A stretch of DNA of 64,000 nucleotides, from NCBI RefSeq assembly GCF_023055435.1, contig NW_025964223.1:25234001-25298000 (forward strand). The letters run 5' to 3'. The position numbers and the translations under genes were made by a program. The stretch is from Haliotis rufescens (lineage: Eukaryota). This document shows, one piece after another, positions 6,001-27,000 of this stretch; positions within the stretch are counted from its first letter, which is position 1, and every line of letters begins with the position of its first letter. The notes below the pieces were generated by a model. That model saw only the letters and a list, made by a program, of their open reading frames with translations. It made no database searches and was not told the origin of the DNA.

Positions 6001-9000
6001 GGGACCCTCGACACTGGTTGTTGAAAATGTCGGTCATGAGCTCCGACTTCTCAGCCAGCACACGCAGGCACATCGCAATACGATCAATGTCATCATCTGT
6101 GATGGGCTGTAACACACAAACACAAACAACATTGATTTCATACAGAAGACTCCTGTCAAAGTTAGGGGAGCAAGGAAGACCTTGATATAAACAAATATCC
6201 TCTTTGTTTGTCTGACGTTGATATTTCCATGAGCCACGTCCGAGTCACAGGATGAGATAATGTTATTTAACACGAAAAGACATTGTGGTACAGAAGGGAG
6301 TGGTGTCATTCACTCAAGTGATATATCCATTTTATATTTTGTGACATATACATTTAATCATTTAATCACCAAATACATGATGAGTAAAGAAGATTGTTCA
6401 TTGACTCAGGCTGAAAGTTATGTGACATTGAACATTACTTTCTTGGAAAACACTGACCTTGGTAGGAAGTCCTGATTTGCCCAGATGGATGATGGTTGCC
6501 ATGATGAGCATGGACTCTGCCACAAAGGCCTGCACAGAGAGAAGTAGTTACAGTCAGGCTGGTGGAAGGGTCAGTATTAGGCAGGTTTCTTAAAACTTTC
6601 TGCACATCACTGTCCATACTTCACATACAGTATGATTCTCCATCTCAATTAACTATGTATGCTACTCACAACTAGTTAAAGAACACCCAGTATTGGAAGG
6701 CTGTGTTGCAATATCCACCAGCCATGACAGATTAACTATAGACATATGGAAAAATAAGTAAGGATAAGAATTTATGGATGAACAACTTCTTTTTTACAAT
6801 TAAGAGCGACGTTTCGGTGTAGGTTCTAACACTGTTATCAAGCAAGTGCAAGGTGTTAGAACCTGCACCAAAACATCGCTCTTAATTGTAATAAAGAAGT
6901 TGTTCATCCATAAATTCTTATCCTTACTTAGTACTCCAACTTCTAAATGCCTATCAAAGAAGAAAAAAAATCAGGTGTTGTTTAACTTCTTTTCAGCAGT
7001 ACATATATGTCCGCTTTGTGGTGTAGTAGCCACGTTTGTCTGTTTTAACTAACATAATGGAGCTATTTACAACACATGGAAATCCCCTGCACCCTACTCC
7101 TTGGGCAGCTCATGACCACTGCCTGAAACAATGTGTAGAGAAGATGTCTGCCAGGGTATCACTGGGTATGGCATGTGTTGCCATTTGTGTGATGCTGATG
7201 CAATCAGATCACTCACTTGTTTGAGCATTCATTGGTTTCACTGTCACTTGAACCAGGCCAAGCCTTGATTTGTTGGTAAAACTGCTAATCAGACAAGTGT
7301 ATTCACGGGTGCATGTAAAAACCTTTGAAGTATTGACGATGTCTGCAAAGGGATCAACCTTGGACCCATTCAAACATCCCTCCTCACCTGAGGAATGACT
7401 TCAATAGCCACTTCTCTAACAAACACTTAATACAGTCCATCACGAAAACTGCTTTGTGGATTGCTTCTCACCAGGAGTGAATGAGTGAGTGAGTGACCTT
7501 TCAGCAATATTCCAGCAACATAAATGGGCACACATTGTACCCATGTAGGGAATCAAACCCAGGACTTCGGAGTGAAGGGTAAATGCTGTAACCAATTGAC
7601 TACTCTACCATCCTTTCTGATAAGGAAGATGTTCTCACATTTTGTCTCTTGACATCCTTGTTGATGTTGATGTATCGGAGACACAGCTTGGTGAGAGTTG
7701 TGGCTAGGGCGGCACCAGTGAAGAACTCTCCATCCATCAGATACTGCCGCATGGTGGGTCTGGGAACACAAGCATAGGCTCATCACTGGTGCAAGCCAAC
7801 TGAGATGTAATGCTGCAGTTTAACATGAATACCTCACTCAGACACAGTATACTGACCCCGAGCCGACCAGTCCTTGTTTTAGCCCCTTAATGCCGAGTGC
7901 CAGACAGGGTAACAACAAGTACCATCTTTTAACGTCTTTTGGTATGACGTGGGGGAATGAACACTGGACCTTCCGCTCGTCCAGTGGACGCTTTACCACT
8001 AGACCACAGAGACGGTCTTAGGTATAGCAGTAACATAGAGTTATTAACTATTTTCAGGATTCAACCCATCCATATTACCTGCATTAAAAACTAATGATGA
8101 AAGTTCTCAATTTTGACGGGTCCTCAATTCACTAATGTTAAAACTTTAGGGTCCCTAATTAAACAAAAGCTTAAATAACCACAGGACCCCCAAATGACTG
8201 ACATTGACTTTTCAGCAGACTTTGATAGGTTAAATCACTTCACTGAATGCCATCGAAACAATATTTAAATGTGACACGAGCCAATCCTATGCTACCCTAC
8301 CACCCCTCAGTGAATTCAATATTAATGTTGAGATATACATTTGGTTGCATTAGAGCAGTGTCTGCTGAAGGATATCTTTCAGTTTGATGATGATTGGTGT
8401 TCCCTAAACTTCAGTTTCTGTGTTACCTCTCCTCCTTCTTGGAGCTGGATGTTGCGCTGAAAGCACTCTGGGTGGCGTACGTCCCATCAGCCGTCACCAG
8501 TCTCTGTACTCCACCGCCGGTCTGCATCTCTACACGGGGGAACAACAAGGGAAAGTGAGTTGAGATTAATGTTGCTTCAAGCATGATTTACTTACTTACT
8601 TAATTACGATGTCAGAGGAAAGTGATGTCCAAAGTGATGCAGGTCTTAGACACTTGCCACTGGGGAATGGTCCTCACCATGACCACTATAGTACATGAGG
8701 ACCTATTCTGCCACGACTGAGTGAGGAGATATCACAGCTTTGAACAGTATTTCAGTTATATCACAGCATGTCAGCTTGATGTGGGAGGGCCTGAAATGAT
8801 GCAGGTCTTACCACCTTGGTGAAATCAATGAGCACAAGTATGGCGCTGACAAACCAAGAAACAGTCATGATGATCCAGGACACAAATCCCAATTCACATC
8901 CAATGCCAAAGGGATGCAACTCTGTGCAGCAACTTTCAGGGCCTCAGATGTGTGGGCCACCCATGTCCCTAAGCTGGCCAGGAACCTATACGAGGAACAT

Positions 9001-12000: not shown

Positions 12001-15000
12001 ACAGACTGACCTCCTCGATGGATCTGGATGTGACGAGGTCGAGGGCAAGTCCGAGGGTCTTCTTGCGGACCTCCTGGTCTGGGGCGTTCAGAACACGCAG
12101 CACATCCATCACCAGCTCCTGCAACAATCAAGAGGATTCGTTTGTGTCGTGAGGAGCCATGTCTGTTGTGAACAGTCAAGTGTTGTAAGGAGCCATTTGT
12201 GTTGTGAAGAGTCATGTGTTGTGAAAAGTCATGAGTATATTGAGGAGTCGTGTGTGGTGAAGAGTTTGGGTACAAATGCTACTGACCTGCAGGACTTTCT
12301 CATGTGCAGCGACATCCTTAAGGTTGATGAGTCTGTCCAGGACAATCAGCTTGACATTGTTGTCACTCTCCTTCACAATCAGCTCGATGTAGCAGCTGGC
12401 GGCAGCCTACAGTTGGAAGCCACAGTATAAGCATCTTGTAGCACATTACAAATTACATGAAATTAAGTAAATATAAAATATAATAAATATAATTCACCAA
12501 AGAAAATATATAACATTGGGTTTTGATACAAATGACACCATAGCAACAAACATAACACAGGAATTGCTGTGGATAGTTCCCGAATAATTGAGATTGCACA
12601 CACTTGCCAATCTGTTAAAAGGAGGGAACATAAACCTAAAATTTGTAATCAAGTCCTCTTTATTATGTGCTACTAATGAAACTGAATTTGAGACAGTCCA
12701 CTTTTTCATGTAACTGATACAATACATGATACAATCAGAACAATTATTATCACAAAGATACTGGCCATGTTTGAGACGGAAGGACAGCAAGCCTCACCTT
12801 GATGGCCGTGGGGGCACTGGAGAGTGTGACGAGGGTGCCGGCGGCCTCGTACCTGACGGCGGGGCTGGACGAGTTGAGAAGGTTGTAGATGCAGCGGATG
12901 AAGCGGGCACGCTCAGAGGGGTTGGCATGGCAAACCTACAACACATACACACTTTCATGCACACCAGATGTCTTGAACGTTATCTGTGGAAGAAGTCACA
13001 GAAACTTCATCTGATTCATCTTACATTCAGAATTTCATGTGGCATTTAATCATATGAATGTATAATTTGAACAAACATCTGCTCAGTCATTGCTTCCTCA
13101 ATACCAGGTTGGATAGTACTTAAAAAACATGCATGTGATAATGACACCTCGGACACTGACACACCTATAACATACAAGGGAGACATTTTCTTCCACTTAA
13201 TCTATAATTTCTTTTGTGGTCACTTGAACATCCATTAGGACATTCACAAGAGACCTATCAATATAACTAGCAGTATGACAGCAAGTCTACTCTTCAATGT
13301 CAATATACATTCCCAGGCTGTGGCCTTACCTTGTAAATAAGTTCCACGATCACCAGCTGAAGGATGTCCCCGAAGGAGGTCACTTGGTCAATACAGCTGC
13401 TCAGGTAGTTAAGGGCACGCTCCTGGGGTAAAAAGAATCAGTAACAGATCATCTTCCTGACAATCACAGTCACCTAGATCACAATGACAGTCAGAGATCA
13501 CCTAGATCACAATAACAGTCAGAGATCACCTAGATCACAATAAGTCAGAGATCACCTAGATCACAATAACAGTCAGAGATCACCTAGATCACAATAAGTC
13601 AGAGATCACCTAGATCACAATAACAGTCAGAGATCACCTAGATCACAATAACAGTCAGAGATCACCTAGATCACAATAAGTCAGAGATCACCTAGATCAC
13701 AATAACAGTCAGAGATCACCTAGATCACAATAACAGTCAGAGATCACCTAGATCACAATAACAGTCAGAGATCACCTACCACACAATCAGAGTCAGAGAT
13801 CACCTAGATCACAATAACAGTCAGAGATCACCTACCGTAATCACAGTCAGGTGAGGTGAGGTGAAATGAGGTTTAACGTCGCGTCCAAGATTATTGCACT
13901 TATATAGCGACGTGTATGCACATGTGTGTGTGGCTGCTTGTACTAGTCCGGACTGATACCGATTTATAGTGCTAGCTCACTGAGATACCATGCCGCAGTT
14001 TAACATAAAACCCCACTCAGATACAGTATACTGACTCCGAGCCGACCAGTCCTTGTTTTAGCCCCTTACTGCAGAGCGCCAGACAGGATAACAACAAGTA
14101 CCATCTTTTAACGTCTTTTGGTATGATGCCGCCTGGGGATCGAACCCCGGACCTTCCGCTCTCCGTGCAGACGCTCTACTATTAGACCATGGAGGCGGTC
14201 CAATCACAGTCAGAGATCACCTAGATCACAATAACAGTCACATATCTTATACCTCACAACCACAGAGATCATCCACCTCACAACTGCAGTCAGAGCTCAT
14301 ATATACATCACAGTTACAGTCAGCCAGTTTCTACCTGCTTACCACTTGTGGATTTCAACCCACGATTAGCAGATCCAGCCAAGGTAGCAATGGACCTCTG
14401 TACAACTAGTTGTATCGAGATATATCAGCATAAGACAAAGATATAAATGTAACAAAAAATGATTTATTGAAACAGCAGCACCAACAGAAACTTCCAATCA
14501 CTTTTACTGAATATAAAACTTATCAATTAGAAATAACCAGTGCTTTATTATAAACAGTGTGTGAACATAAACTGACCTGATCAGCATGGATCAGCATCAT
14601 GAAGGCATTCCTCTTGCAGGACATGTCCTGTTCCCCCTCCAGGAAGTTAGCAATCAGTTCGGGGGCATCCGGGATCAGGAAGTCAAAATTCCTGAAAGAG
14701 GGATTTGGGAGTCAGTTGGGTATAATGCCATTTTCAGCAGTAGTTCAGTAATATCATGGGTTTGGTGAAACCCCTGAGTAGGACCATGGTGATGACAGAC
14801 AAGGGATCATAACTGTCAACTCTGCAGTGCCAGTTGCACCACCTTACAATGACATACAATTCCTGAAAGCAAACCTTTCATGTCCGTATATTTTGTTTCC
14901 TTAGAAGTCTCCTGCAATTTTACTGACTGTAAACAACCTGTTAACAGCATTGCAATCTTTTAGTCAGTTGGTGAGGTTATGATTTTTTTTATATCAAAGA

Positions 15001-18000
15001 TAACTCTCTACCCCAATAGGTAACTCTTATCAAGTGTTGGGTTGCCTTTATTTGTGAGCATGCTACACATGTAATTATCTTGTTGTCATTTAACAATGAA
15101 CTCCTCAATATTCCAGTTGTATGGCGGCGGTCTGTAAATAATCAAGTCTGGAAAAGACAGTCCAGTGATTGACATCATGAGTATCGACATGCATCAACCA
15201 ACAGCGAGCCCAACCACCTGATGCTGTTAGTAGCCTATTACGACAAGCATAGTTGCCTCTTACAGCAAGCATGGGTTGCTGAAGACCTATTCTCTACCCG
15301 GACCTTCATGAAAATATAGAGTGTCACTGTCAGTATGGAGAATGTATGCTTCATCTGCAGTTACATACCCTACTCCCAGAATGGTATACTTCTGGAAACT
15401 CTATGCATTTAACCTCAGTTTCTGAATATTTTACTAAGTGCATCATATCATCTATGTAAGTAACAGTGTTATATTAGAATTGAAGCTAAACGCTAACAAA
15501 ATGTTTTTAACTTCAGCGCAATAAAACAAACAGTGCCTTTCAGATCAAAATATCTAGGGTCAGCTGGTGCTGTTCCCCATTTGTAGGAAGACTAGTGATA
15601 CACAACAAACGCCTGTGACCTGACCTGCAGGTGATTACCATCATTACATGGGAAGTAATCACAGTCATAGAACTAGGTCCTTTATTACTTCATTTAGATT
15701 TATTCTCCAAACATAAGGTCAGTTGTTAAAATAATATTTTGCAAAACAATGTTTCTATGAAGCAATATCGAAAAAGCATAGTTAAAACATACAATACACG
15801 ACCTATTTTACAACTTTTAAAGCAAACTATTTGGAAACCAGTTGGCAATGGCAACAATTATTGCATACATACTCTCTTTTATACCATTTATATTACCATT
15901 TAAAAATGATAATTGCTGAAATTAGAAATTAAATGTATTTTCAAGTGTATGTGCTTATGTCAAAATTGTAACACAACTGTTCACAACTCCACCCTCAGAG
16001 TGGACAGATAGGATTTCTTTTTTCAAGTTACCATTACTTGGACAAGAAGATCTATGTTTAATGGTGACATTTGATCTCACATCAAGGTTTTCTCTACCAA
16101 TTTATTCATTCATTCAGCTTTATCATGTTTGACAGATCCTTCAATCCCTGAACACAAAGCCTGATGACAGGGGTATACTGTATCATGCTCTACGTTACAT
16201 TTCCCTATCTACTGGGGAATTACAAATTTGCAAATTGAAAAAGGATAGGTGTCTGTCTGCTTGACTGATATAAATAAATACAATTAAAACAATTAAAAAT
16301 AAATAAAATATCAAACACTTCAAACAAGATAACAAAACAAACATTTTAAAAGAGATGAAAGAAATATTTTAAAAAACTATGTCTTTCCCTTGAAACCACC
16401 GAGTTATGGATAAAAATATCTTTAAGTCATAGTTAAAAGTAATTTTCTCCTCAAATCACTAATAAACAACTGTTACACAGTAAAACTGTCAGGCAGCCTG
16501 CCCTGCCTAACATGAGCCTGCAAGATTGAATCAATACTGATCATGTGACTTAAGCTCAGCACATGATAGGGCTATTTTTAGATTTCCAGGAAGACAGGGT
16601 TTTCCAGGAAGAAGCTACTTTCACTTTTCAGTTTGCCACGAAGTGACGACACAGAAGGCTATCAACAGGATCAAGTAGGAGTGTATGCATATGAAATGAG
16701 TATTTGATCCAATATCTTGAGAATTTGACGTGTGAGATTACAACACACAGGTTTCAAGGAAAGGATTACAATCGTAACATATAAGATAGATGCATTGGGA
16801 TAGATAATGCCAATGTGAAGATAACTGCTGTTTGGTGAAATTATGGCCACATCAAAATCAGTGAGTACAACTTCAATCTTATTACCACAAAGGTAGTTGC
16901 TGAAAAAGGATATTACAATTATCAATTGACATTTATTCAGAAGATCACTGTGTAAAAGATGTTTTTGTGCTCCAATTACGTGTGAATTGCACTCATGCAT
17001 TGCATTCTCATCACAACAATTGTACTACTGAACATACAACACATAGACATTGAAATAAGGATCAAGGCTAATTCAGTTTTTAAGTGTGCTTAAACAATTG
17101 CATTTTCCCAGTTTGGTTAAAATTCCTAAAGGTTAAACATACTGGGTAAGCAAGGATAAGCTGAGTTATGGCCTCACAATTAACCCTATGAGGTCTGCCC
17201 ACTGGGGCATACCACTGACTGAAGAAAGGGGTAGCTGGTGGTCCTCCACAAGTAGTATGATGGTTACGTGAGTGTACTATTTTGGCTAACAAGTTCTAGT
17301 GGAAAGTTCATTAACACATAATCATGATAATAGTACATGCTGATGTCAGGTACCCCATGACTGGGTAAACGGTGACAGAAAAGGGAATTCATTTGCTTTA
17401 AAAATGGAATAATATTGTTTACACCAGAGAGCTTTAATGAATAGTGTTATGTCATTCATCAAATGATTGTGAAGGTTTAGACCTTAACATAGTGACAGTT
17501 ACTCAATGACATACTCCTAATTAATCCCATGTGATTGTTTATGGGGCTTCAGCATACTGTATGTTGCAATGTTGAGATAGGTGAGGTAAAATTGGGTTTA
17601 ACGTCGCGTCCAAGATTATTGCACTTATATAGCGACGTGCATGCACGTGTATGTGTGTGTGTGTGGCTGCTTGTACTAGTCTGGACTGATGCCGATTTAT
17701 AGTGCTAGCTCACTGAGATACCATGCCGCAGTTTAACATGAATACCCCACTCAGACACAGTATACTGACTCCGAGCCGACCAGTCCTTGTTTTAGCCCCT
17801 TAATGCCGAGCGCCAGACAGGGTAACAACAAGTACAATCTTTTAACATTTTTGTATGACGCGGCCCGGGATCGAACCCTGGACCTTCCGCTCTCCGGGCG
17901 GACGCTCTACCACAAGACCACGGAGGCGGTCCAATGTTGAGATAACTGGATTACCATAGCACATCCACTGTCACATACTGATGAGGTTTCTGTAGCTGAT

Positions 18001-21000
18001 CCACTTGTCAGACTAAGTGCGACAATGATCATGATGCTGCCCATTTCTCTTCTAACCGCTATTCCCCATTGCCTGTAGCCATCTTCAACACATCGTACAT
18101 GCTTACCTAGCTTTGACATGTTTAATTGTTGTAATTAATTTCTTTCAAACAACTTTTACAGAATTCTGGTATCGACTTATCACACCAACCTCTTAATAGT
18201 CAGTCTTATGAACAACTCATGTTTCCATGGGGGTTGTTGTCAATTTCATTGTCATGACCTGCACATGCACAACATGAGTACACCATCTCTACCTGTAACA
18301 AAGCATGTTTCCCCTAATTCTGTGCACTGCCTACTTGTCTCAAATGCATTTTGTGAGCAAATAAGATAATCAATAAAACAATAAACACAAATCCTATTTT
18401 CAAGGTTTCAGGGTGGGATAAATATCATGAAACATAAGATTCAAAAGGAAACTTTCATTTTGTCTTAGCTTTATTCAAAAAGTATTGTCAGCACAAAATA
18501 GATTTGTAAGTTCTGGTATGTATTTACATTCTTATGTAAAATCAGAAAGAAAACTTAATAAATGATATGATTTCTGTCATATTCAAGTAATTTAACTGAC
18601 TATTACAGATGAGGAAAGCTGTATTGAACTTCGCTACTGCAACCTCCAAGAACATTGTCAAACAAATCACAGTGGAGTGGAGCAAAAAGAAAGTGAAGAT
18701 CTGCAGCCTGTGTGTGTCAATATGTACAGTAAAGACTGGGGAAGTAGTCCTCATGTTCGTGACCTTGCAGCCAGGGGAGACAACTGTGGACCTGCCACTA
18801 CAGCTGGGAACAGAGGCAGGCACGGTCAGGCTTGTTGTCCATGGTCTGGCCGAGAAGGACTCAACACTAAGTCAGTACTACACCATTGCAGGAAGTTGTA
18901 TCAAACAGCTTACCAAGACTATAGCAGGTACAATAAACAATAATTCTTTGGAAAATGCAGGAAAAACATATATTTCTTGCCTCAGCTTTTGCTGAAGATT
19001 GCTTCTAATGTTTGCAAGGACATAATATTTTCCCTTCAACTGACTTTCATTACTAAAGCAGCCCTCATTTGACATTTTAATGAAATGTACATGGGTCATG
19101 GATACCATTTCACTTTGATAGGGCTTGAGATATGACACTAATTACATGTACATATTATAAGTAATCAGTCTTGTACATCTTCAAATAAAAGAAATATCTC
19201 TATGAAAAGTTCAATAGAATAAAGATCCATTGCTACTTAGACAGCTTCAGTTGTAAGAAACGTTTTATGAGAACAATATTTCTTGAGAATTACTATTTTT
19301 AACCAAAAATGTTTCAGAAACATCGGATGGGAAACTGACTCTCCAGTTATCGAACAAGCACACACTAGATGCCACATGTACAAAACTTCAGGAAAAAGTG
19401 GTAATTACATGTCGTTTTTCTATCTCATAAACAGTCACCACATGTATATAACTTCCTACATTAAGTTGGTAGGAAGATAGAACGAAGGAGTTTTGAATAA
19501 ATTGCTCATATGCATAAAAGTGATTATCAACGCTGATTGGTTAGTTCAGGCGTTATGGTTATGGTAAATAAATTACAAATATTACAAGTGATTACACAGC
19601 ATTTGATTGACTAAGCATGCAGTTTTTGGGCAATTATGATGCTCTAAACCTAAAACAAATTGGTCCACTGCCACTAGTGCCCCTGTTGCATTATTGCACA
19701 GATTTTGTGTTGTTGTCTGCAGTATTTGTGTTAATGATTAAATTAGCAGTCTGTGAAGTTACTATAGTTGACCTATTGGTCCATCATTGTTTATACAAGG
19801 GGTTAGACCGTATACATGCTGGTTCCTTTGTTCATACTTCCATAAAACATATTTAAGTCAGTTATTGATAACATCATCCATTGATCATGACATCACAAAT
19901 CGCTAACTTTATGTCATCTAAACATGTCACTGGCAAAGCTTGAGCATTGGTAATAAATGACATTACTAGTGAAAAGTACTAGCAGTGAAACGATACAGCA
20001 AGGTCACGATACAATGAGATTCACAATACATAGTTCACGATATAATATGTATCGCGACACACATATTTACATCAAATCACATGGAAACTTCTTGACTTTA
20101 AATATTTCATAGCAGGTTCAAACGAAAAGCTAGCTGTAGACACATGTTCGTAGTAGCTATTTTTTGTAGTGTCACTAATCATGCTAATTACAACACATTT
20201 TGGGATATTTGGCTTATTAAAATGCTGGGGGCGGGGGGATGTGTGTGTGTCATTCAACAAGTAGTAAGTTACAAATTTTAGCAAGTGTATCGTCTTGTAT
20301 TGATACAGGAAAATATGTATCATGTATCATATCGTGGAATGAATACCCCCTAAAAACTACATGAAGCAACACCTGTTTCCTTTCATCAACTATTGACACA
20401 CGTATCCCCCCACAACTGATTTCCGTTATCATGTTTTGTGGCCTTACAGGAGGAGTTTCAAATCGGCATCAAACAGCAACCGCCATCTTGGTACTACGTA
20501 TCTAATCTGCCAACAACAGGAAGCAGACAAAAGCCATCCACACGCCAGTTTCTGATAGTGCTTCAGCAGCGAGAGCCATTTGAAGAGTCACTTATGCTGC
20601 AATCAACAGCAAGCCCCTATGTCCAGATTCCTGTAGCACTGCCATCGCTGACTGACTTCGCCACCAAGGTGTACTGGGTGAAGTCAGTGCTACAGACCCA
20701 GAACTACGCACTGTACACAGTCTTCAGAAAGTCAGACACGCCTTGCTTCAGAACATGTGAGTAGGATGCCAGCAGTGTCAAATACACTTGCCTTATATGG
20801 CAACAAATAGTCTAGCTATATCACAGCGTGCTGCAAATAGTTGAGATTGGGACTAGCAGACCATTGGTTGATGGCATCATGTGGTACAGGGGACCCATCT
20901 TGCCAGGAATTCCAATGAGAGCGGGGGTGGGGCCAGTGATGGTAAAGTCCTGAAAGTGACATTCATAGTCTTAAACTAATCTACAAGACATGTAAGTCAT

Positions 21001-24000
21001 TAAAATTTCACAATCTATTTTCAGATTTATCCTTAGAAGAAATGACCACACTTCACACAAGAGCCACGTCTTTGGTGCCCAAGAACAAGAAGAAAGACTT
21101 TTACTATGTCATCCCCTACTTCTACAGAAACAAACCCCCGGAATACTACAGCAACATCTTCAAGAACCGTGGCGGCATCATGGAGACATACCGCAAAGAC
21201 TACAACGGTGACCGAGGCTCGCCAATCAATGGCAACATCGATGGTTTGTTCTTCGGGACAGGTCTTGATCCCAAAACACGTCTTCCTCCTGCATTTTCCT
21301 ACTATGGACGGCAACGTCTCTACATTCCAGCTGACATAATCTTCCACGACGCTGCCAATCTGTACTTTGCTGACTTCTACTGCCACTATGAAGTGCATTA
21401 TGTAACTCTGGTTCTCACTGAACCTGGTTCATCTGCTGATGTTTTCTGCCAAAACCGCTTGTTGAAGCTTGATCCCTACAACAACCCATTCCTGTTCAAA
21501 GAAGCCACGGTCCTCCCACTGTCCCGGCCCGAGATTTGTGTGACTCATAAACTACATGTGGAGGTCTTCTATACCGAACATGTCAACATTGGGGCATTGC
21601 AGAGATCAAAGCCCATGGATGTGTTCTTCAGAGATGTGCAACCCATGGGGGCTGGCAAGAGCAAACCTAGTGGAATCCCCAAAAATGCAAATTGCAAAAT
21701 ATGCAATTTGAAATGAAATATCAACTAAATTGTTATCAATTGATGTTCATGAAAAATTTCATATATTTTGTAATTCTACGATGAATAAGCTTTAAGAAAA
21801 TACTAAATGTAAGATTCTGAAAATATATACATGGGAGAAATTTGCTGTAAAAAACAATATTTTGCTGAAATCTCGCACATTTTTTCACGTCATTCAATAA
21901 CTGGTTACGTCTTCTACAGGTTATACATGAAGACATTTATAACATAAGGACAAGAACCCATTGACTTTATTTGAACACCGTGACTGTCATGATAACAGTA
22001 AAAACAGCAATTCATTCAACAGTGGTTCATCATTGTGTTCTCTTCCACTCATCCAAAGTGCTTTATTTCATTGTTTTATTGGTTTGACAGTGGTTGACAT
22101 GTTTCAAACAGGTGTTAGTGTTACATTTATAATTGTAAAAAGGTCAGGATCTGAAACAATCCACAGTATGATATGTAAAACCAGACTTTATTTTGTGTAA
22201 GATTTTAGTGCATTTGTAGGAATATTTTATCGTGGGTAATAATAACATGCAATAAAACACAACCAGTGCATCTAGTAAAGTGAACCTTCATTTTGATTGA
22301 GTAGTCAGTGTTAATCTGTTACATTTGTGTAAAATATCTGATTTTAATGAGATTGAACATAAATAAGCTGGCAAAATATACATTGTGTAAATGTGTCGCA
22401 AAATATACATTGTGTAAATGTGCCGCAGATTGCCAAAATGCTCATATTTTTACAGATCGTCATTCAATTGATCTCCATTTAAATTAATCACACTTAATAT
22501 CTTATTAACTGTAAGTAAACAGGCGGCGAAACCGCATTATCAAGGGTTCATACTGGGAAAGGGAGGTCACTCTAATTTCAAATGGGAGCCATCTCTGTTG
22601 TTTTCGTATTTGCGAGAAATTTCATCAGTCACGCTGTACGTTGTTGTTGGTCCAGCTATTAAATGCACAGCTTATCCCTAAGGTAAAACATATTCTTAAT
22701 TAAATGTTTGAATGCATTATATATTTATGTTTCCATCCGTACATCTTCTTAGATTGGTTTAGTGCTGATAACCATTTTCTAAAATGTGGGCCCACATTGT
22801 TCCCGTCATATATGGTGATCGAAACAAGTGGGGCCCTATATGTATATTCCCCTAGCTTCATTAGGTTGTTTAATTAGTGCTGATAATCAATTCCTAAATG
22901 TGGGCAGACGTTCTTCCGTCATATTGATTGCAACAGGAACGATCACATTTATTAATTGGGAAATTCCACTTAATCATTGATAACCATTTTCTAAAATGTG
23001 GGCCCACATTGTTCCAATCATATATGGTGATCAAAACAAGTAGACCCACATTTGTATATCGCCTTGTGGGCAGACGTTCTTCCGTCATAGTTATTGCAAC
23101 AGGAGGGACTACATTTATAAATTGCTAAGCTTCATTAGCTTGCCTTACTTATAACCATTTTCTAAAATGTGGGATCACTTCTTCTGTCATATAATGATCG
23201 AAACACGTGGGCCCACATTTGTAAATCGCTGGGTTGACTAAGTCGTTCAGTGGGCTCACATTTGTCATTACCTTGCACGGGTATGTAGCATTATATATTA
23301 TTCTCATGTTGTAACATTGATGGAAAATGTCTTTGTAAATTATTTAGTGTGACATTAGTTCCACGAAAGGCACACAAAGTCTTTGAAGTTTGAATAACGT
23401 CATTATAGCTGACCACATTCGTTCCATAATAGTTTTGCAAAAATAGTTACAAAGCAAGAAACTTAGATCTACTCCAAAATACATTTACAGAGGCAATACA
23501 ACTCATTCTACTTTTTCCAGTATAACAAATCAATCTAATCATAAGTTTTTGTGGCGATATAAGCCTGAAAATATGTCTACACTTGAATTGAACTCGGACA
23601 TGATACAAGCCTATCACCTCAAAATTGTTCCATAAACATGATAAAAGGAATTACTCATGAATATCAACGATCCCACAAACTAGTTTTGCGATGTTCGTAG
23701 AAGTGAGTTCTGCTGTAGTGTCTTCGCAGTTGTACATTCAAATCCAATTATAAGTCATAATACTTAATTTAAATAGACAAAATAGCAGTTTGTTTACGTT
23801 GTACATATTCTCAACAAGTGCGTTTAGTTTCGAATGTGGGCCCACCTAGAACTTTCGATAAGGCAAACAGAGTTAGCTCCAGGCAATGTGAAGCAGCTGA
23901 ACATACTGTATTTATATATATCAGCAAAGAAAGTGCTGTCTTGTAAATAAAACTGTACAAACAGACGATTTTTTCTTTATTATAGTTTTCTCCTCATTTA

Positions 24001-27000
24001 GTTTCATCACAACGGGGTAAGATATATATTGTGTCCTGTTACCATGGTTACTAATCTCTACTGGCACAATTAGGTGGCAACATCCCTGTCATCTGTCTCC
24101 TAATAATGCATATTACAATACATTCTTACTTCATTTTTTTATATGTGGAAACAACGCCATGCACAGTCAAAGCTCACTTATCCAGACACTAGCATTTTCT
24201 CAAATAGTGTCCAGATAAACAAGTTTCTGGATATCTGAATCCCTGGTAAACTGACCAGAGCTACATCCCATACCCAGATTCTACAGAGGATTAAAAAACT
24301 ATAATCCATAAAATCTTTATTTAATACACTGTTCATCCAAAATCAATAAATGAAGAAGGATAAATTGAATATACATGTAGTATGTTCATTCGTGTGCACA
24401 TCCAAGAGTCTTACATTATTGTCTGCATTACTGCGCAATTGCTGCAAAGCCAAATTTCCACAAAAATGCATCTTTCATGTTTTGATGTTTAAAATCTAAT
24501 GAACAAGAAAATTCTGACCAATCTTCAGATAAGTTCAATCGTTTTACTTATAAACATGATAAAATGTCACCTATCATTGATTTTCAGATGTTGAATATTT
24601 ACTCAAATATGCTTCAGGATTAGTATTCTTAAACTGACAGGATTCCTTCTTTTCACAAGCTCTAACTGCATGTTGTTTCTGCTTCACTGGTTGGCTCGTC
24701 CTGTTGACCTTGATCCTATGTACCAGTACTGTGTAGACACTCACATTGTTTTGTTAATTGATGTGATCATCTGAAACCTCACCTCAGTGTCAAATGACAA
24801 TGACTGCTCAACTAACTATCGAGACATGTAACTAATCAACACTGTGATCACATGATACCTGCACCCTTTGATGGTGGCTGTCGGGTGATGAATTGCAACA
24901 CAGACATCGTCAAGTGTGGCTGCTGTCCGTTAAGACGGACACAATGGTCTGTACTTCCACTGTTGGTAAAGGTAATTCAATGTCCAGATCCAGAAACTGG
25001 ATTTCCAGATAAAAGCAGCATTTTATGTTGAAAATATTTCGTATTATGTAAATATTGTCTGGTAGGCGAGGTTTCTTGGTATCTGTGGTCCAGATAAGCA
25101 GGGTTTCACTGTAGTCAGCTGAGTAATGGGAATCACATCGTCTTTTGCAAGCAATACACAACATGATTTCTCTTACATTATCACTACTTTAACAATTAAT
25201 GAATTGTTTCCATGTAATGATAAATGAAGGAGTGAGGGAATATTGCTTTATTCCTGCAGTTATTCATAGTGATGATCAGATCACTGTCAGTCCAACAAGT
25301 AAATAAGGAGTAACTTATGCCATTATTAACAATATTCAAACATTGCTAGGAGTTTTTTTTAAACGCCACCTCACTCCCAGCAATATTCCAGCTATAAGAT
25401 GTCAGTCTGTAAATTAGCAAGTCTGGACAAGGCAATCCAGTGATACGATGACAGGCTATCAACCAAAGGACCTACCCTGACCACTTGATCAATTTAGTCC
25501 TCTTTTGACCATCAAAGGTAGCTGTGCAATTCTAAAATTCCAGAATCTGGAAATTCCAGGACATCAGTGTGTGGAACACCACCAGTTTGAAAATCATGTG
25601 CTGTGTTCACTAGCAGTATCCTACCTGTAGATGGTGTAGATAGCCAGCACAGCATTCCGTCGGACATACGAGTGCCTATGCTCCAGACACTGTCTGATGG
25701 CCGGCATGAGAGGCTCCACCAGCTCAGGCTCCTTCAACTTGCACAGGAATCGGAGTGTGGAGCCACGAATGAACTCATTTGGATGTTGCAGGTCCTGTAC
25801 AGCCAAAAGAAACACTAAAGATTCTGCCGTGCAGACAAAAACAATAATCAGTATAATTTTGGCAGGAGCTGGCAAGCTGGTGATCATGAGACTCTTAAGG
25901 ATAACAAGGGACTTAACTTATACTTTTCTTATACACAAATATTCTGATATTTCAAGACACTGAAAGGCATTAAAAACTTCGAAATTGAAACATGTCATGG
26001 GTTTCTTAAATTATAAACAATAAGTCAAGAAATAAGAAACTGTCGGAAGTATGACTGTCACAAGTCTATGTTAGAGTATCAAGAGTTACAATGGTTGCAG
26101 TGTTGGTGAGCGGCAGCTTGGGACACAACTTGAAATCGTAGACCACTGGGCTACCTGAGGGCAAAGGCAGGTTTAACAGTCCTCAAGAACATTAGTGACT
26201 GAGTTAATCATGTCAATGATGCATTCTACCATGAATTTGGAAATTTGTCAAGTCTGATTGGTCAGTCAGAGGGGGTTAAATCACAATAACCCCGTGACTG
26301 AAACAGCCGATTTGACGGACGCATCACAGCGTAAGCCAATATTCATAGATTAGTACTTTTTTAAAGTCATTGGTTCCAAATTCAATTTAGCGAGGTTAAA
26401 TTTACAGGTAACCTAGGTCTAGATTGAAAGCACAGTATGTTTATCTCCTAAGTACCTACACTGTGTACATAGGCCTGCAGCAAACAGTACCGATTTATCA
26501 GCCACAATACCAATACTGCAGCAACCTCATCCCCATCTTACCATACAACATCATCAGAACCCACATCAGGGATCCAATCAGGAATGACCCAGTGAGTCAA
26601 TGCTGCATTAGTATAGCTGATATCCAAAAGGTTTACTCAGCTTCTCATCATGCTCATGGACATTCCTTATTTTTTCAAATTGTGTCTTTGTTACAATAAT
26701 GCAAACAGATTTCAGAAAAATGAACTGTATCTATGACTGAAACTGTGCGCACCTTTCTGTAGGCATCACAGACAAGGATCATCTCCTGCATGAGCTTGCC
26801 GTCGGGCGTGTACTTGGGCACCACCTCCCAGAAGATGAGCAGCATCTTCTTCACCATGTGGTCCTGCATCGGCATCACGAAGCGGATGATGGTCATCAGG
26901 AGAGATGGCATCTTCTCCCCATTCAGGATCTGCTGAATTGTCTTCTTCAAGGCTTCAACTTTCGTCTTTGTATCGCCCTTTTCTGAAAAAAGATGAATAT

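Follow-up and report, generated by a model that had tools for sequence, protein, structure and literature searches.

A GAS-ISRE motif cluster ahead of the nested PHYHIP_C gene LOC124111115 makes it a candidate infection-induced gene in Haliotis rufescens

The promoters of vertebrate interferon-stimulated genes of the GBP and IRF1 type carry adjacent GAS and ISRE sites. The IFN-beta enhanceosome (PRDIV-PRDIII/I-PRDII), by comparison, is built without STAT sites and requires a full kB site. Molluscs respond to poly(I:C) and to viruses with an antiviral state, and to our knowledge no true interferon is known in this group; abalone are farmed and are affected by herpesvirus disease. Excerpts of the relevant invertebrate papers describe oyster antiviral axes that run through RIG-I/MAVS-IRF and cGAS/STING-TBK1-IRF-IFNLP (PMC5557890, PMC8218723), oyster IRFs that activate mammalian ISRE and IFN-beta reporters (PMC5557890), and an IRF-Vago antiviral axis in shrimp (PMC4602278). 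As far as these excerpts go, native IRF/STAT promoter elements of molluscs are barely described, because the oyster study used mammalian reporters. The oyster and shrimp systems in these excerpts resemble the case presented here in that mollusc IRFs recognise a vertebrate-type ISRE in reporters and the abalone genome has IRF, STAT and Rel, and the oyster work differs from it in that mammalian reporter promoters were used there, whereas the abalone candidates are native promoter elements known from sequence. In agreement with an earlier sequence-only reading of this DNA, which had stated that molluscs have all three factors, we found at least two IRF loci, with loci on C79 and C595, at least one STAT locus, on C334, and at least two Rel-homology loci in the H. 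rufescens genome.

In the whole stretch of DNA that we analysed (64 kb, hereafter the window), two identical copies of TTCCAGGAA, a palindromic STAT-type site of the form TTCN3GAA, occur at 16584-16592 (GAS 1) and 16602-16610 (GAS 2), 18 bp apart as had been stated, and both lie inside a repeated 12-mer, TTTCCAGGAAGA (16583-16594 and 16601-16612), with a period of 18 bp. After a gap of 6 nt, GAS 2 is followed by an ISRE / IRF-E at 16617-16635 with three half-sites, which on the minus strand reads AAACT-GAAAAGT-GAAAGT. Here ACTTTCACTTTTC (16617-16629) is the reverse complement of GAAAAGTGAAAGT and fits the ISRE / IRF-E consensus, and its AGTTTG extension to 16635 provides the third half-site; the full IRF element with an additional half-site that was described earlier is indeed present, in minus-strand reading. 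A weak kB-like 9-mer, GGGTTTTCC (16597-16605, plus strand), overlaps GAS 2 as reported, but does not fit the NF-kB 10-mer GGGRNWYYCC, of which the window holds three consensus matches, all elsewhere; it agrees at 9 of 10 positions with the insect Dorsal/Dif-type GGGAAAANCC. The TCAGTT (16628-16633) and the TGACG half-CRE (16644-16648, plus strand; weak) are both found where they had been placed, but such words are frequent, TCAGTT occurring 3.3 and TGACG 1.5 times per kb. TCAGTT at 16628 was rejected as an initiator, because the GAS and ISRE sites would then fall within the core promoter. Further downstream we located a CRE-like site, TGACGTGT (16726-16733, plus strand), and a palindromic GAS 3, TTCAAGGAA (16753-16761), which the earlier account lacked, giving three TTCN3GAA sites in total (16584, 16602 and 16753). 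These are followed by TATAAG (16780-16785, plus strand), which by its position, 63 bp ahead of the start codon, is a candidate TATA box and would predict a transcription start at approximately 16808-16815. On the upstream side, the cluster is preceded by a single copy of a 17-nt repeat unit, TGAATCAATACTGATCA (16527-16543, plus strand), and by an inverted E-box pair (16542-16565).

Like vertebrate interferon-stimulated-gene promoters, this region has an IRF-E/ISRE that fits G(A)AAA(G/C)(T/C)GAAA(G/C)(T/C), and tandem palindromic TTCN3GAA sites, all of them no more than a few hundred bp from the presumptive start of the gene, with a TATA-like box downstream. Unlike those promoters, it belongs to a gastropod without recognised interferon, it would serve a PHYHIP_C gene and not a known interferon-stimulated gene, its ISRE is reversed and lies 6 nt past the GAS, and it is known from sequence alone. 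With the IFN-beta enhanceosome it shares an IRF core, AAGTGAAAGT, that resembles PRDI, as well as the packing of its sites within ~65 bp; it differs in having no consensus NF-kB 10-mer beside the IRF sites, a TGACG half-site where the enhanceosome has PRDIV (ATF-2/c-Jun), three contiguous IRF half-sites compared with four, and a predominance of STAT-type sites. The enhanceosome-like label under which the cluster was first described is therefore not supported, since the abalone cluster has STAT-type sites and lacks a full kB site.

The GAS/ISRE cluster precedes the start codon (16843) of LOC124111115 by 210-260 bp, with GAS 3, the CRE-like site and TATAAG in between. This H. rufescens gene has five exons and 472 codons on the plus strand: the coding part of exon 1 (16843-16860; MATSKS, the ATG and five codons, residues 1-6 of the RefSeq protein P0157), exon 2 (18609-18927; residues 7-112 and the first base of split codon 113, behind an acceptor AG at 18607-18608), exon 3 (19318-19400), exon 4 (20450-20756), and exon 5 (21025-21716), which encodes the PHYHIP_C domain (Pfam PF19281) and the stop codon. 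We checked this model by exon-by-exon comparison with P0157, the RefSeq protein of LOC124111115, and found the translations of all exons in order; all introns are GT-AG. The start codon has an A at -3 and a G at +4, with an in-frame TAA at 16822, exon 1 ends at a canonical GTGAGT donor (16861-16866), and the N-terminus of the H. asinina orthologue, XP_067675667.1, reads MATSKT. An upstream exon had been implied from the acceptor at 18608/18609, and this is the exon at 16843-16860, which splices to that acceptor, equals the RefSeq protein and has the cluster directly ahead of it. The weak donor suggested at 16675 found no support, the canonical GTGAGT at 16861 taking its place, and the ATG at 18609 that had been taken for the start is codon 7. 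Another, non-coding 5′ exon may lie upstream of the cluster. The gene belongs to the PHYHIP_C family, the PF19281 match scoring 114.3 bits where the cut-off is 27 (E 8.2e-33), and the PHYHIP_C protein has 594 relatives at E<=0.001 in a representative library; a Pfam search of exons 2 and 4 returned no family.

From this arrangement, and from the similar IRF sites of related genes in this genome, LOC124111115 appears to be a good candidate for an infection-induced gene, and we lean towards the reading that its proximal promoter has the cluster as its upstream part, immune-switched via the GAS-ISRE composite, which we consider somewhat better than an even prospect. An IRF protein would bind the three-half-site ISRE and STAT would bind the tandem GAS sites, whose 18 bp centre-to-centre spacing could permit cooperative STAT binding. 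In that case, immune signalling would turn the gene on through the GAS-6 nt-ISRE composite, in the manner of vertebrate interferon-stimulated genes whose GAS and ISRE lie side by side. The IRF part of this proposal is better supported than the weaker STAT part, and an NF-kB part is doubtful. The locus offers a compact test case: its GAS-GAS-ISRE module is single copy, and the start codon 210-260 bp downstream is defined. If induction is true, PHYHIP_C would represent a new effector family in lophotrochozoan antiviral defence, and native elements would become available for abalone reporter assays; without induction, what remains is an ordinary promoter whose motifs are suggestive.

The PHYHIP_C family comprises at least 22 loci in the H. 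rufescens genome, in tandem arrays, and the upstream regions of 19 paralogues (175 kb) contained 16 strict ISRE matches, compared with 4 in a reversed control, with at least one strict ISRE in 12 of the 19 regions. Six short PHYHIP_C paralogues on three contigs (the C179 array, C445 at 44.9 Mb, and C112 at 68.1 Mb) have a promoter module of ~110-150 bp in common, which exists in only six copies genome-wide. The best-conserved 21-mer of this module is the ISRE, in which 20 of 21 columns are invariant (background invariance 0.48; ~1e-3 after correction), and the module lies 130-190 bp ahead of a mini first exon (ATGGCTGAAGG..., followed by GTAAG). Such an ISRE footprint in the paralogue promoters supports function. 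We observed that the layout of the module, a TTCCAGGAA-type GAS and a multi-half-site ISRE located 130-230 bp ahead of a mini first exon with an MA.. start and a GT donor, is also that of the window gene. The modules differ from the window promoter in that their ISRE has the opposite orientation and their GAS spacing is different; the GAS is intact in only three of the six, and the short paralogues are without the long N-terminal region present in the window gene. The window promoter could not be aligned to the six-paralogue module, and only site types and layout are common to both. The site types that the earlier account suggested looking for upstream of paralogues do recur there, above all the invariant ISRE.

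When the window promoter was compared by blastn with all paralogue upstream regions, only the 21-nt ISRE and the 17-nt repeat unit were matched, both in the closest paralogue. That paralogue has a GAS after its ISRE, which is nearly identical to the window element (95% across 21 aligned positions), and the TGAATCAATACTGATCA unit (17/17 by blastn) is tandemly amplified there (L035, oriented 880-1040 and 6290-6625), preceding the ISRE just as it does in the window. The TGAATCAATACTGATCA match is weak evidence for homology of the two promoter regions. No mini first exon was found for the closest paralogue, and tblastn of window-gene exons 2-4 against the paralogue upstream regions gave no match; other family proteins placed N-terminal exons for some paralogues.

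Across the genome, TTCCNGGAA followed by a reversed ISRE within 40 nt gave 30 matches compared with 14 in the control, and the opposite orientation of the GAS-ISRE composite gave 35 compared with 15. According to spacer classes counted by hand from the match listings, the spacer was 12 nt or less in 21 of 30 composites (16 of 24 after collapsing duplicated families), compared with 2 of 11 in the control, and the GAS-6 nt-ISRE spacing of the window falls within this genome-wide preferred class. The two-GAS composite (GAS-GAS-ISRE) had ten genome matches versus two in the control, which are small numbers; there was no evident coding sequence within 1.5 kb of any of these ten loci (L024-L033), and a scan of metagenomes for the same pattern returned no match.

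That the invariant element of the paralogue promoters is a textbook ISRE, that GAS-ISRE composites are over-represented genome-wide, and that the family has expanded in tandem arrays to at least 22 loci, as is common among immune gene families, all make it rather unlikely that the region is a genuine promoter whose sites are used by other factors or another programme (ETS-type, BCL6-type, or tissue-specific or developmental IRF/STAT), with no response to virus or dsRNA. Such a promoter would nevertheless accord with the TTCC/GGAA cores, which could suit ETS-type or BCL6-type factors, with the inverted E-box pair (16542-16565) and CRE-like sites close by, with a GAS that is poorly kept in the paralogue module (three of six), and with the retrieved papers on vertebrate PHYHIP/PHYHIPL, which concern brain and glioma contexts and not immune ones; moreover, the evidence here consists of position and motif content only.

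We similarly regard it as improbable that the cluster is a chance gathering of short AT-rich/GGAA-rich words that regulates nothing, with the real signals lying in the TATA-proximal ~60 bp or elsewhere. The TTCCAGGAA word occurs three times in the 64-kb window against 0.51 expected, and 2 of 100 shuffles reach three. In 2000 first-order Markov simulations of the window, using RAAANNGAAAST as the ISRE pattern, 5% of runs produced an ISRE that had one or more GAS no further than 60 bp away, which speaks for chance, and 0.05% produced one that had two or more within this distance, a rarity in favour of the promoter reading; the true chance figure lies between these values, because both GAS sit in one 12-mer duplication and are not independent. 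Chance is further favoured by the origin of the second GAS in that duplication, by a genome-wide two-GAS composite with just 10 matches against 2, and by the fact that the cluster was singled out post hoc by a motif-seeking reader who had looked for such motifs across many windows. However, the cluster lies less than 260 bp from a start codon that this reader had not identified, its site types and layout recur in paralogues where the ISRE is footprinted, the ISRE of the closest paralogue is nearly identical (95%, 21 aligned positions), and the 6-nt spacer belongs to the enriched class. Positions 16450-16750 have one match in the 1.33-Gb genome; the cluster is therefore single copy and not part of a high-copy repeat, a possibility that had been raised at the outset.

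As described in the sequence-only reading, the plus-strand PHYHIP_C gene is nested within another gene, in a minus-strand intron of COPB1. On the minus strand, COPB1-like open frames extend from ~27400 to ~2960, and we take them, by eye, to be coatomer beta; the host intron of ~11 kb (approximately 14712-25623, minus strand) is bounded by exon-bearing open frames at 14526-14711 and 25624-25917. Although the cluster lies inside this intron, ~1.9 kb from the nearest COPB1 exon, a role as an intronic enhancer or alternative promoter for COPB1 or a more distant gene is highly improbable, given that the nearest correctly oriented exon is exon 1 of the nested gene (~210 bp away), that a minus-strand start here would yield COPB1 without its first exons, and that paralogues outside COPB1 have a like module directly before their own first exons.

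Going beyond the proximal-promoter reading of this single locus, we tentatively raise the possibility, which we would not yet favour, that the PHYHIP_C family of molluscs consists of effectors induced by infection through IRF/STAT and built on a divergent ADP-ribosyltransferase-like fold, and that the GAS-short spacer-ISRE composite is part of a genome-wide abalone cis-regulatory code. If this were true, an ISG-like promoter grammar would have existed outside vertebrates, wired to other effector genes. Our literature search found no link of PHYHIP/PHYHIPL to mollusc or invertebrate immunity, nor to ADP-ribosyltransferases, and for the PHYHIP_C domain a protein atlas and a profile search of solved structures gave nothing usable. 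The predicted structure of the domain has a pLDDT of 96, and Foldseek with this model returned nothing at E<=0.001. With VIA-align, nearly all 35 rows belonged to the ART superfamily (Tpt1, DarT, PARPs, diphtheria-/pertussis-type toxins, and OspC3), with a best Z of only 4.0, a weak structural hint that the product may be a NAD-using, ADP-ribosyltransferase-like effector. Within the domain, R29 is invariant, and S86 and E174 are near-invariant.

LOC124111115, the plus-strand gene downstream of the GAS-ISRE cluster, has a last exon that encodes a PHYHIP_C domain (PF19281, E 8.2e-33), and a search of protein representatives returned an H. asinina orthologue (XP_067675667.1) of 472 residues with the N-terminus MATSKTTRRAVLNF. 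MATSKS is encoded at 16843-16860, with GTGAGT directly after it, and MRKAVLNF is encoded right after the acceptor at 18608. We located the Haliotis rufescens RefSeq protein of this gene, P0157, by a word search and compared the exons with it one by one, not as a joined model. All five plus-strand translations were found in it, in order: exon 1 (ending at 16860, coding part 16843-16860) at residue 1, exon 2 (18609-18927) at residue 7, exon 3 (19318-19400) at residue 114, exon 4 (20450-20756) at residue 141, and exon 5 (21025-21716), which carries PHYHIP_C, at residue 244. Every intron is bounded by GT-AG and the coding sequence comes to 472 codons; the start codon at 16843 is preceded by A at -3 and followed by G at +4, and a TAA lies in frame upstream of it at 16822. 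The upstream exon implied by the sequence-only reading therefore exists as the MATSKS exon, with its donor at 16861 and not at 16675, while the ATG at 18609 is codon 7.

The gene is nested in COPB1, whose minus-strand open frames, assigned to coatomer beta by eye, run from ~27400 down to ~2960. Because exon-bearing COPB1 frames flank it at 14526-14711 and 25624-25917, LOC124111115 and its promoter lie inside an ~11-kb intron. The ISRE stands 214-226 bp and the two tandem GAS sites 233-259 bp upstream of the start codon. Should TATAAG at 16780 act as a TATA box, the predicted transcription start would be near 16810, which would place the ISRE at about -180 to -195, a typical position for a proximal regulatory module given that predicted start. 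We regard the cluster as very probably belonging to the proximal promoter of LOC124111115. Just past the COPB1 3′ end we also observed a long tandem repeat (1107-2390) with a unit of ~31 residues, which keeps three reading frames open for 350-427 codons on both strands.

By reading 16300-17000 and locating motifs by script, we recovered every element listed in the sequence-only reading: GAS 1 and GAS 2, both TTCCAGGAA (16584-16592, palindromic, and 16602-16610; STAT-type), a kB-like 9-mer, GGGTTTTCC (16597-16605), an ISRE that is the reverse complement of GAAAAGTGAAAGT and is read on the minus strand (16617-16629, with a third half-site ending at 16635), TCAGTT (16628) and TGACG (16644). Three further elements had not been listed: a third GAS, TTCAAGGAA (16753-16761), a CRE-like TGACGTGT (16726), and the TATAAG. 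The proposed NF-kB component is doubtful, since the kB-like 9-mer fails the GGGRNWYYCC consensus. About 20 bp upstream of GAS 1, at 16540-16567, lies an inverted pair of E-boxes (ATCATGTG ... CACATGAT), the first of which we take to resemble an MITF/TFE-type box.

That the cluster belongs to a high-copy repeat, an objection that the sequence-only reading had itself raised, was ruled out by the single match of 16450-16750 in the 1.33-Gb genome. As to chance, TTCCAGGAA was found three times in the window where 0.51 would be expected, and among 2000 windows simulated under a first-order Markov model an ISRE fell within 60 bp of one GAS in 5% and of two GAS in 0.05%; both tandem GAS sites belong to a repeated 12-mer (16583-16594 and 16601-16612) and so are not independent events. 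TGACG and TCAGTT are common words.

PHYHIP_C loci number at least 22 in the genome, and most sit in tandem arrays; for 19 of them we examined upstream sequence of up to 10 kb (175 kb in all). These regions contained 16 strict ISREs, compared with 4 for the reversed control, and 12 of the 19 had at least one. A promoter module with only six copies genome-wide, all of them upstream of a PHYHIP_C exon, is shared by six paralogues on three contigs (C179:2788039, 2799700, 2806413 and 2822724; C445:44917552; C112:68134753; among them L043:3897-4046, minus strand). At pairwise identities of 69-84%, the best-conserved 21-mer of this module is an ISRE (AAATCGAAAG.GAAAGTAACA), in which 20 of 21 columns are invariant, whereas the background invariance is 0.48 (about 5e-6 per window, about 1e-3 after correction); only three of the six have an intact adjacent TTCCAGGAA-type GAS. 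A mini first exon (ATGGCTGAAGG..., MAEGG.., then GTAAG) follows 130-190 bp downstream of the module, the same layout as at LOC124111115, and family proteins of several species begin with MA.., which would fit an old mini first exon. A TG microsatellite also lies downstream of the module.

The closest paralogue, 50% identical to LOC124111115 in the domain, has ACTTTCACTTTCAGTTTGC, which matches the window ISRE at 95% identity over 21 aligned positions and is followed by a GAS. Its upstream region and first intron carry a 17-bp repeat in tandem arrays, each unit made up of AATCAATACTGATCA and two variable bases (L035, oriented 880-1040 and 6290-6625), and a single such unit occurs in the window at 16527-16543, in the same order relative to the ISRE. 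This shared order hints weakly at homology of the two promoter regions; beyond the ISRE and the repeat unit, we found no alignment between the window promoter and those of the paralogues.

Genome-wide, GAS-GAS-ISRE in the window arrangement gave 10 matches, compared with 2 for the reversed control. In one, L027:1500-1590 (minus strand), two GAS sites spaced 9 nt apart as in the window are followed after 4 nt by a reversed ISRE, with a full, perfect TGACGTCA ~40 bp upstream and, in the flanking 1.5 kb, no recognisable coding sequence. A search for TTCCNGGAA with a reversed ISRE at most 40 nt downstream gave 30 matches against 14 in the control, and GAS-ISRE in the other orientation 35 against 15. 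Counted by hand from the match listings, spacers of at most 12 nt made up 21/30 of the former composites, or 16/24 with duplicated families collapsed, compared with 2/11 in the control; the window spacer, at 6 nt, falls in this enriched class. Near-identical composites with short spacers recur at several loci, some as local arrays or an inverted pair (C594:16991242, 22134744, 22147988, 22164672 and 39764029; C112:4491430, 4507871 and 4508338; C2:30012631; L024; C35:37812997/37814069 and 523247), and are likely to mark the promoters of other duplicated gene families.

IRF, STAT and Rel-homology genes are all present in the genome, at no fewer than two, one and two loci respectively, and mammalian ISRE and IFN-beta reporters are activated by oyster IRFs (PMC5557890). 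Our literature searches found no link between PHYHIPL-like genes and mollusc immunity. The enhanceosome analogy does not hold, since the IFN-beta enhanceosome combines a consensus kB site with an ATF-2/c-Jun site and lacks STAT sites, whereas the arrangement in the window resembles a vertebrate interferon-stimulated-gene promoter, with GAS adjacent to ISRE. Our best reading of the cluster, with moderate confidence, is a putative inducible promoter that would be IRF-dependent and possibly STAT-assisted.

The 236-residue N-terminal region of the protein (exons 2-4, 18609-20756) had no family in Pfam, and tblastn found no match to it upstream of the 19 paralogues. H. asinina shares this region (59-78% identity across three exon matches), as does a Gigantopelta protein (37% identity over the whole protein). 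The PHYHIP_C domain (21042-21713) was modelled at pLDDT 96 from a 51-sequence alignment. Foldseek matched it to no solved structure at E<=0.001, and DNA polymerases lambda and mu were among its weak top rows together with diphtheria toxin, exotoxin A and tankyrase. Against 48,161 chains, VIA-align returned 35 rows, nearly all of ADP-ribosyltransferase fold (Tpt1, DarT, PARPs, toxin ARTs and OspC3), with a best Z of only 4.0. The consistency of this list is suggestive of an ADP-ribosyltransferase-like fold in the model, at scores too low for a claim, and a literature search found no link between PHYHIP_C and ADP-ribosyltransferases. Invariant residues of the domain include R29, C114, C136 and a C-terminal CxxC (C218, C221).
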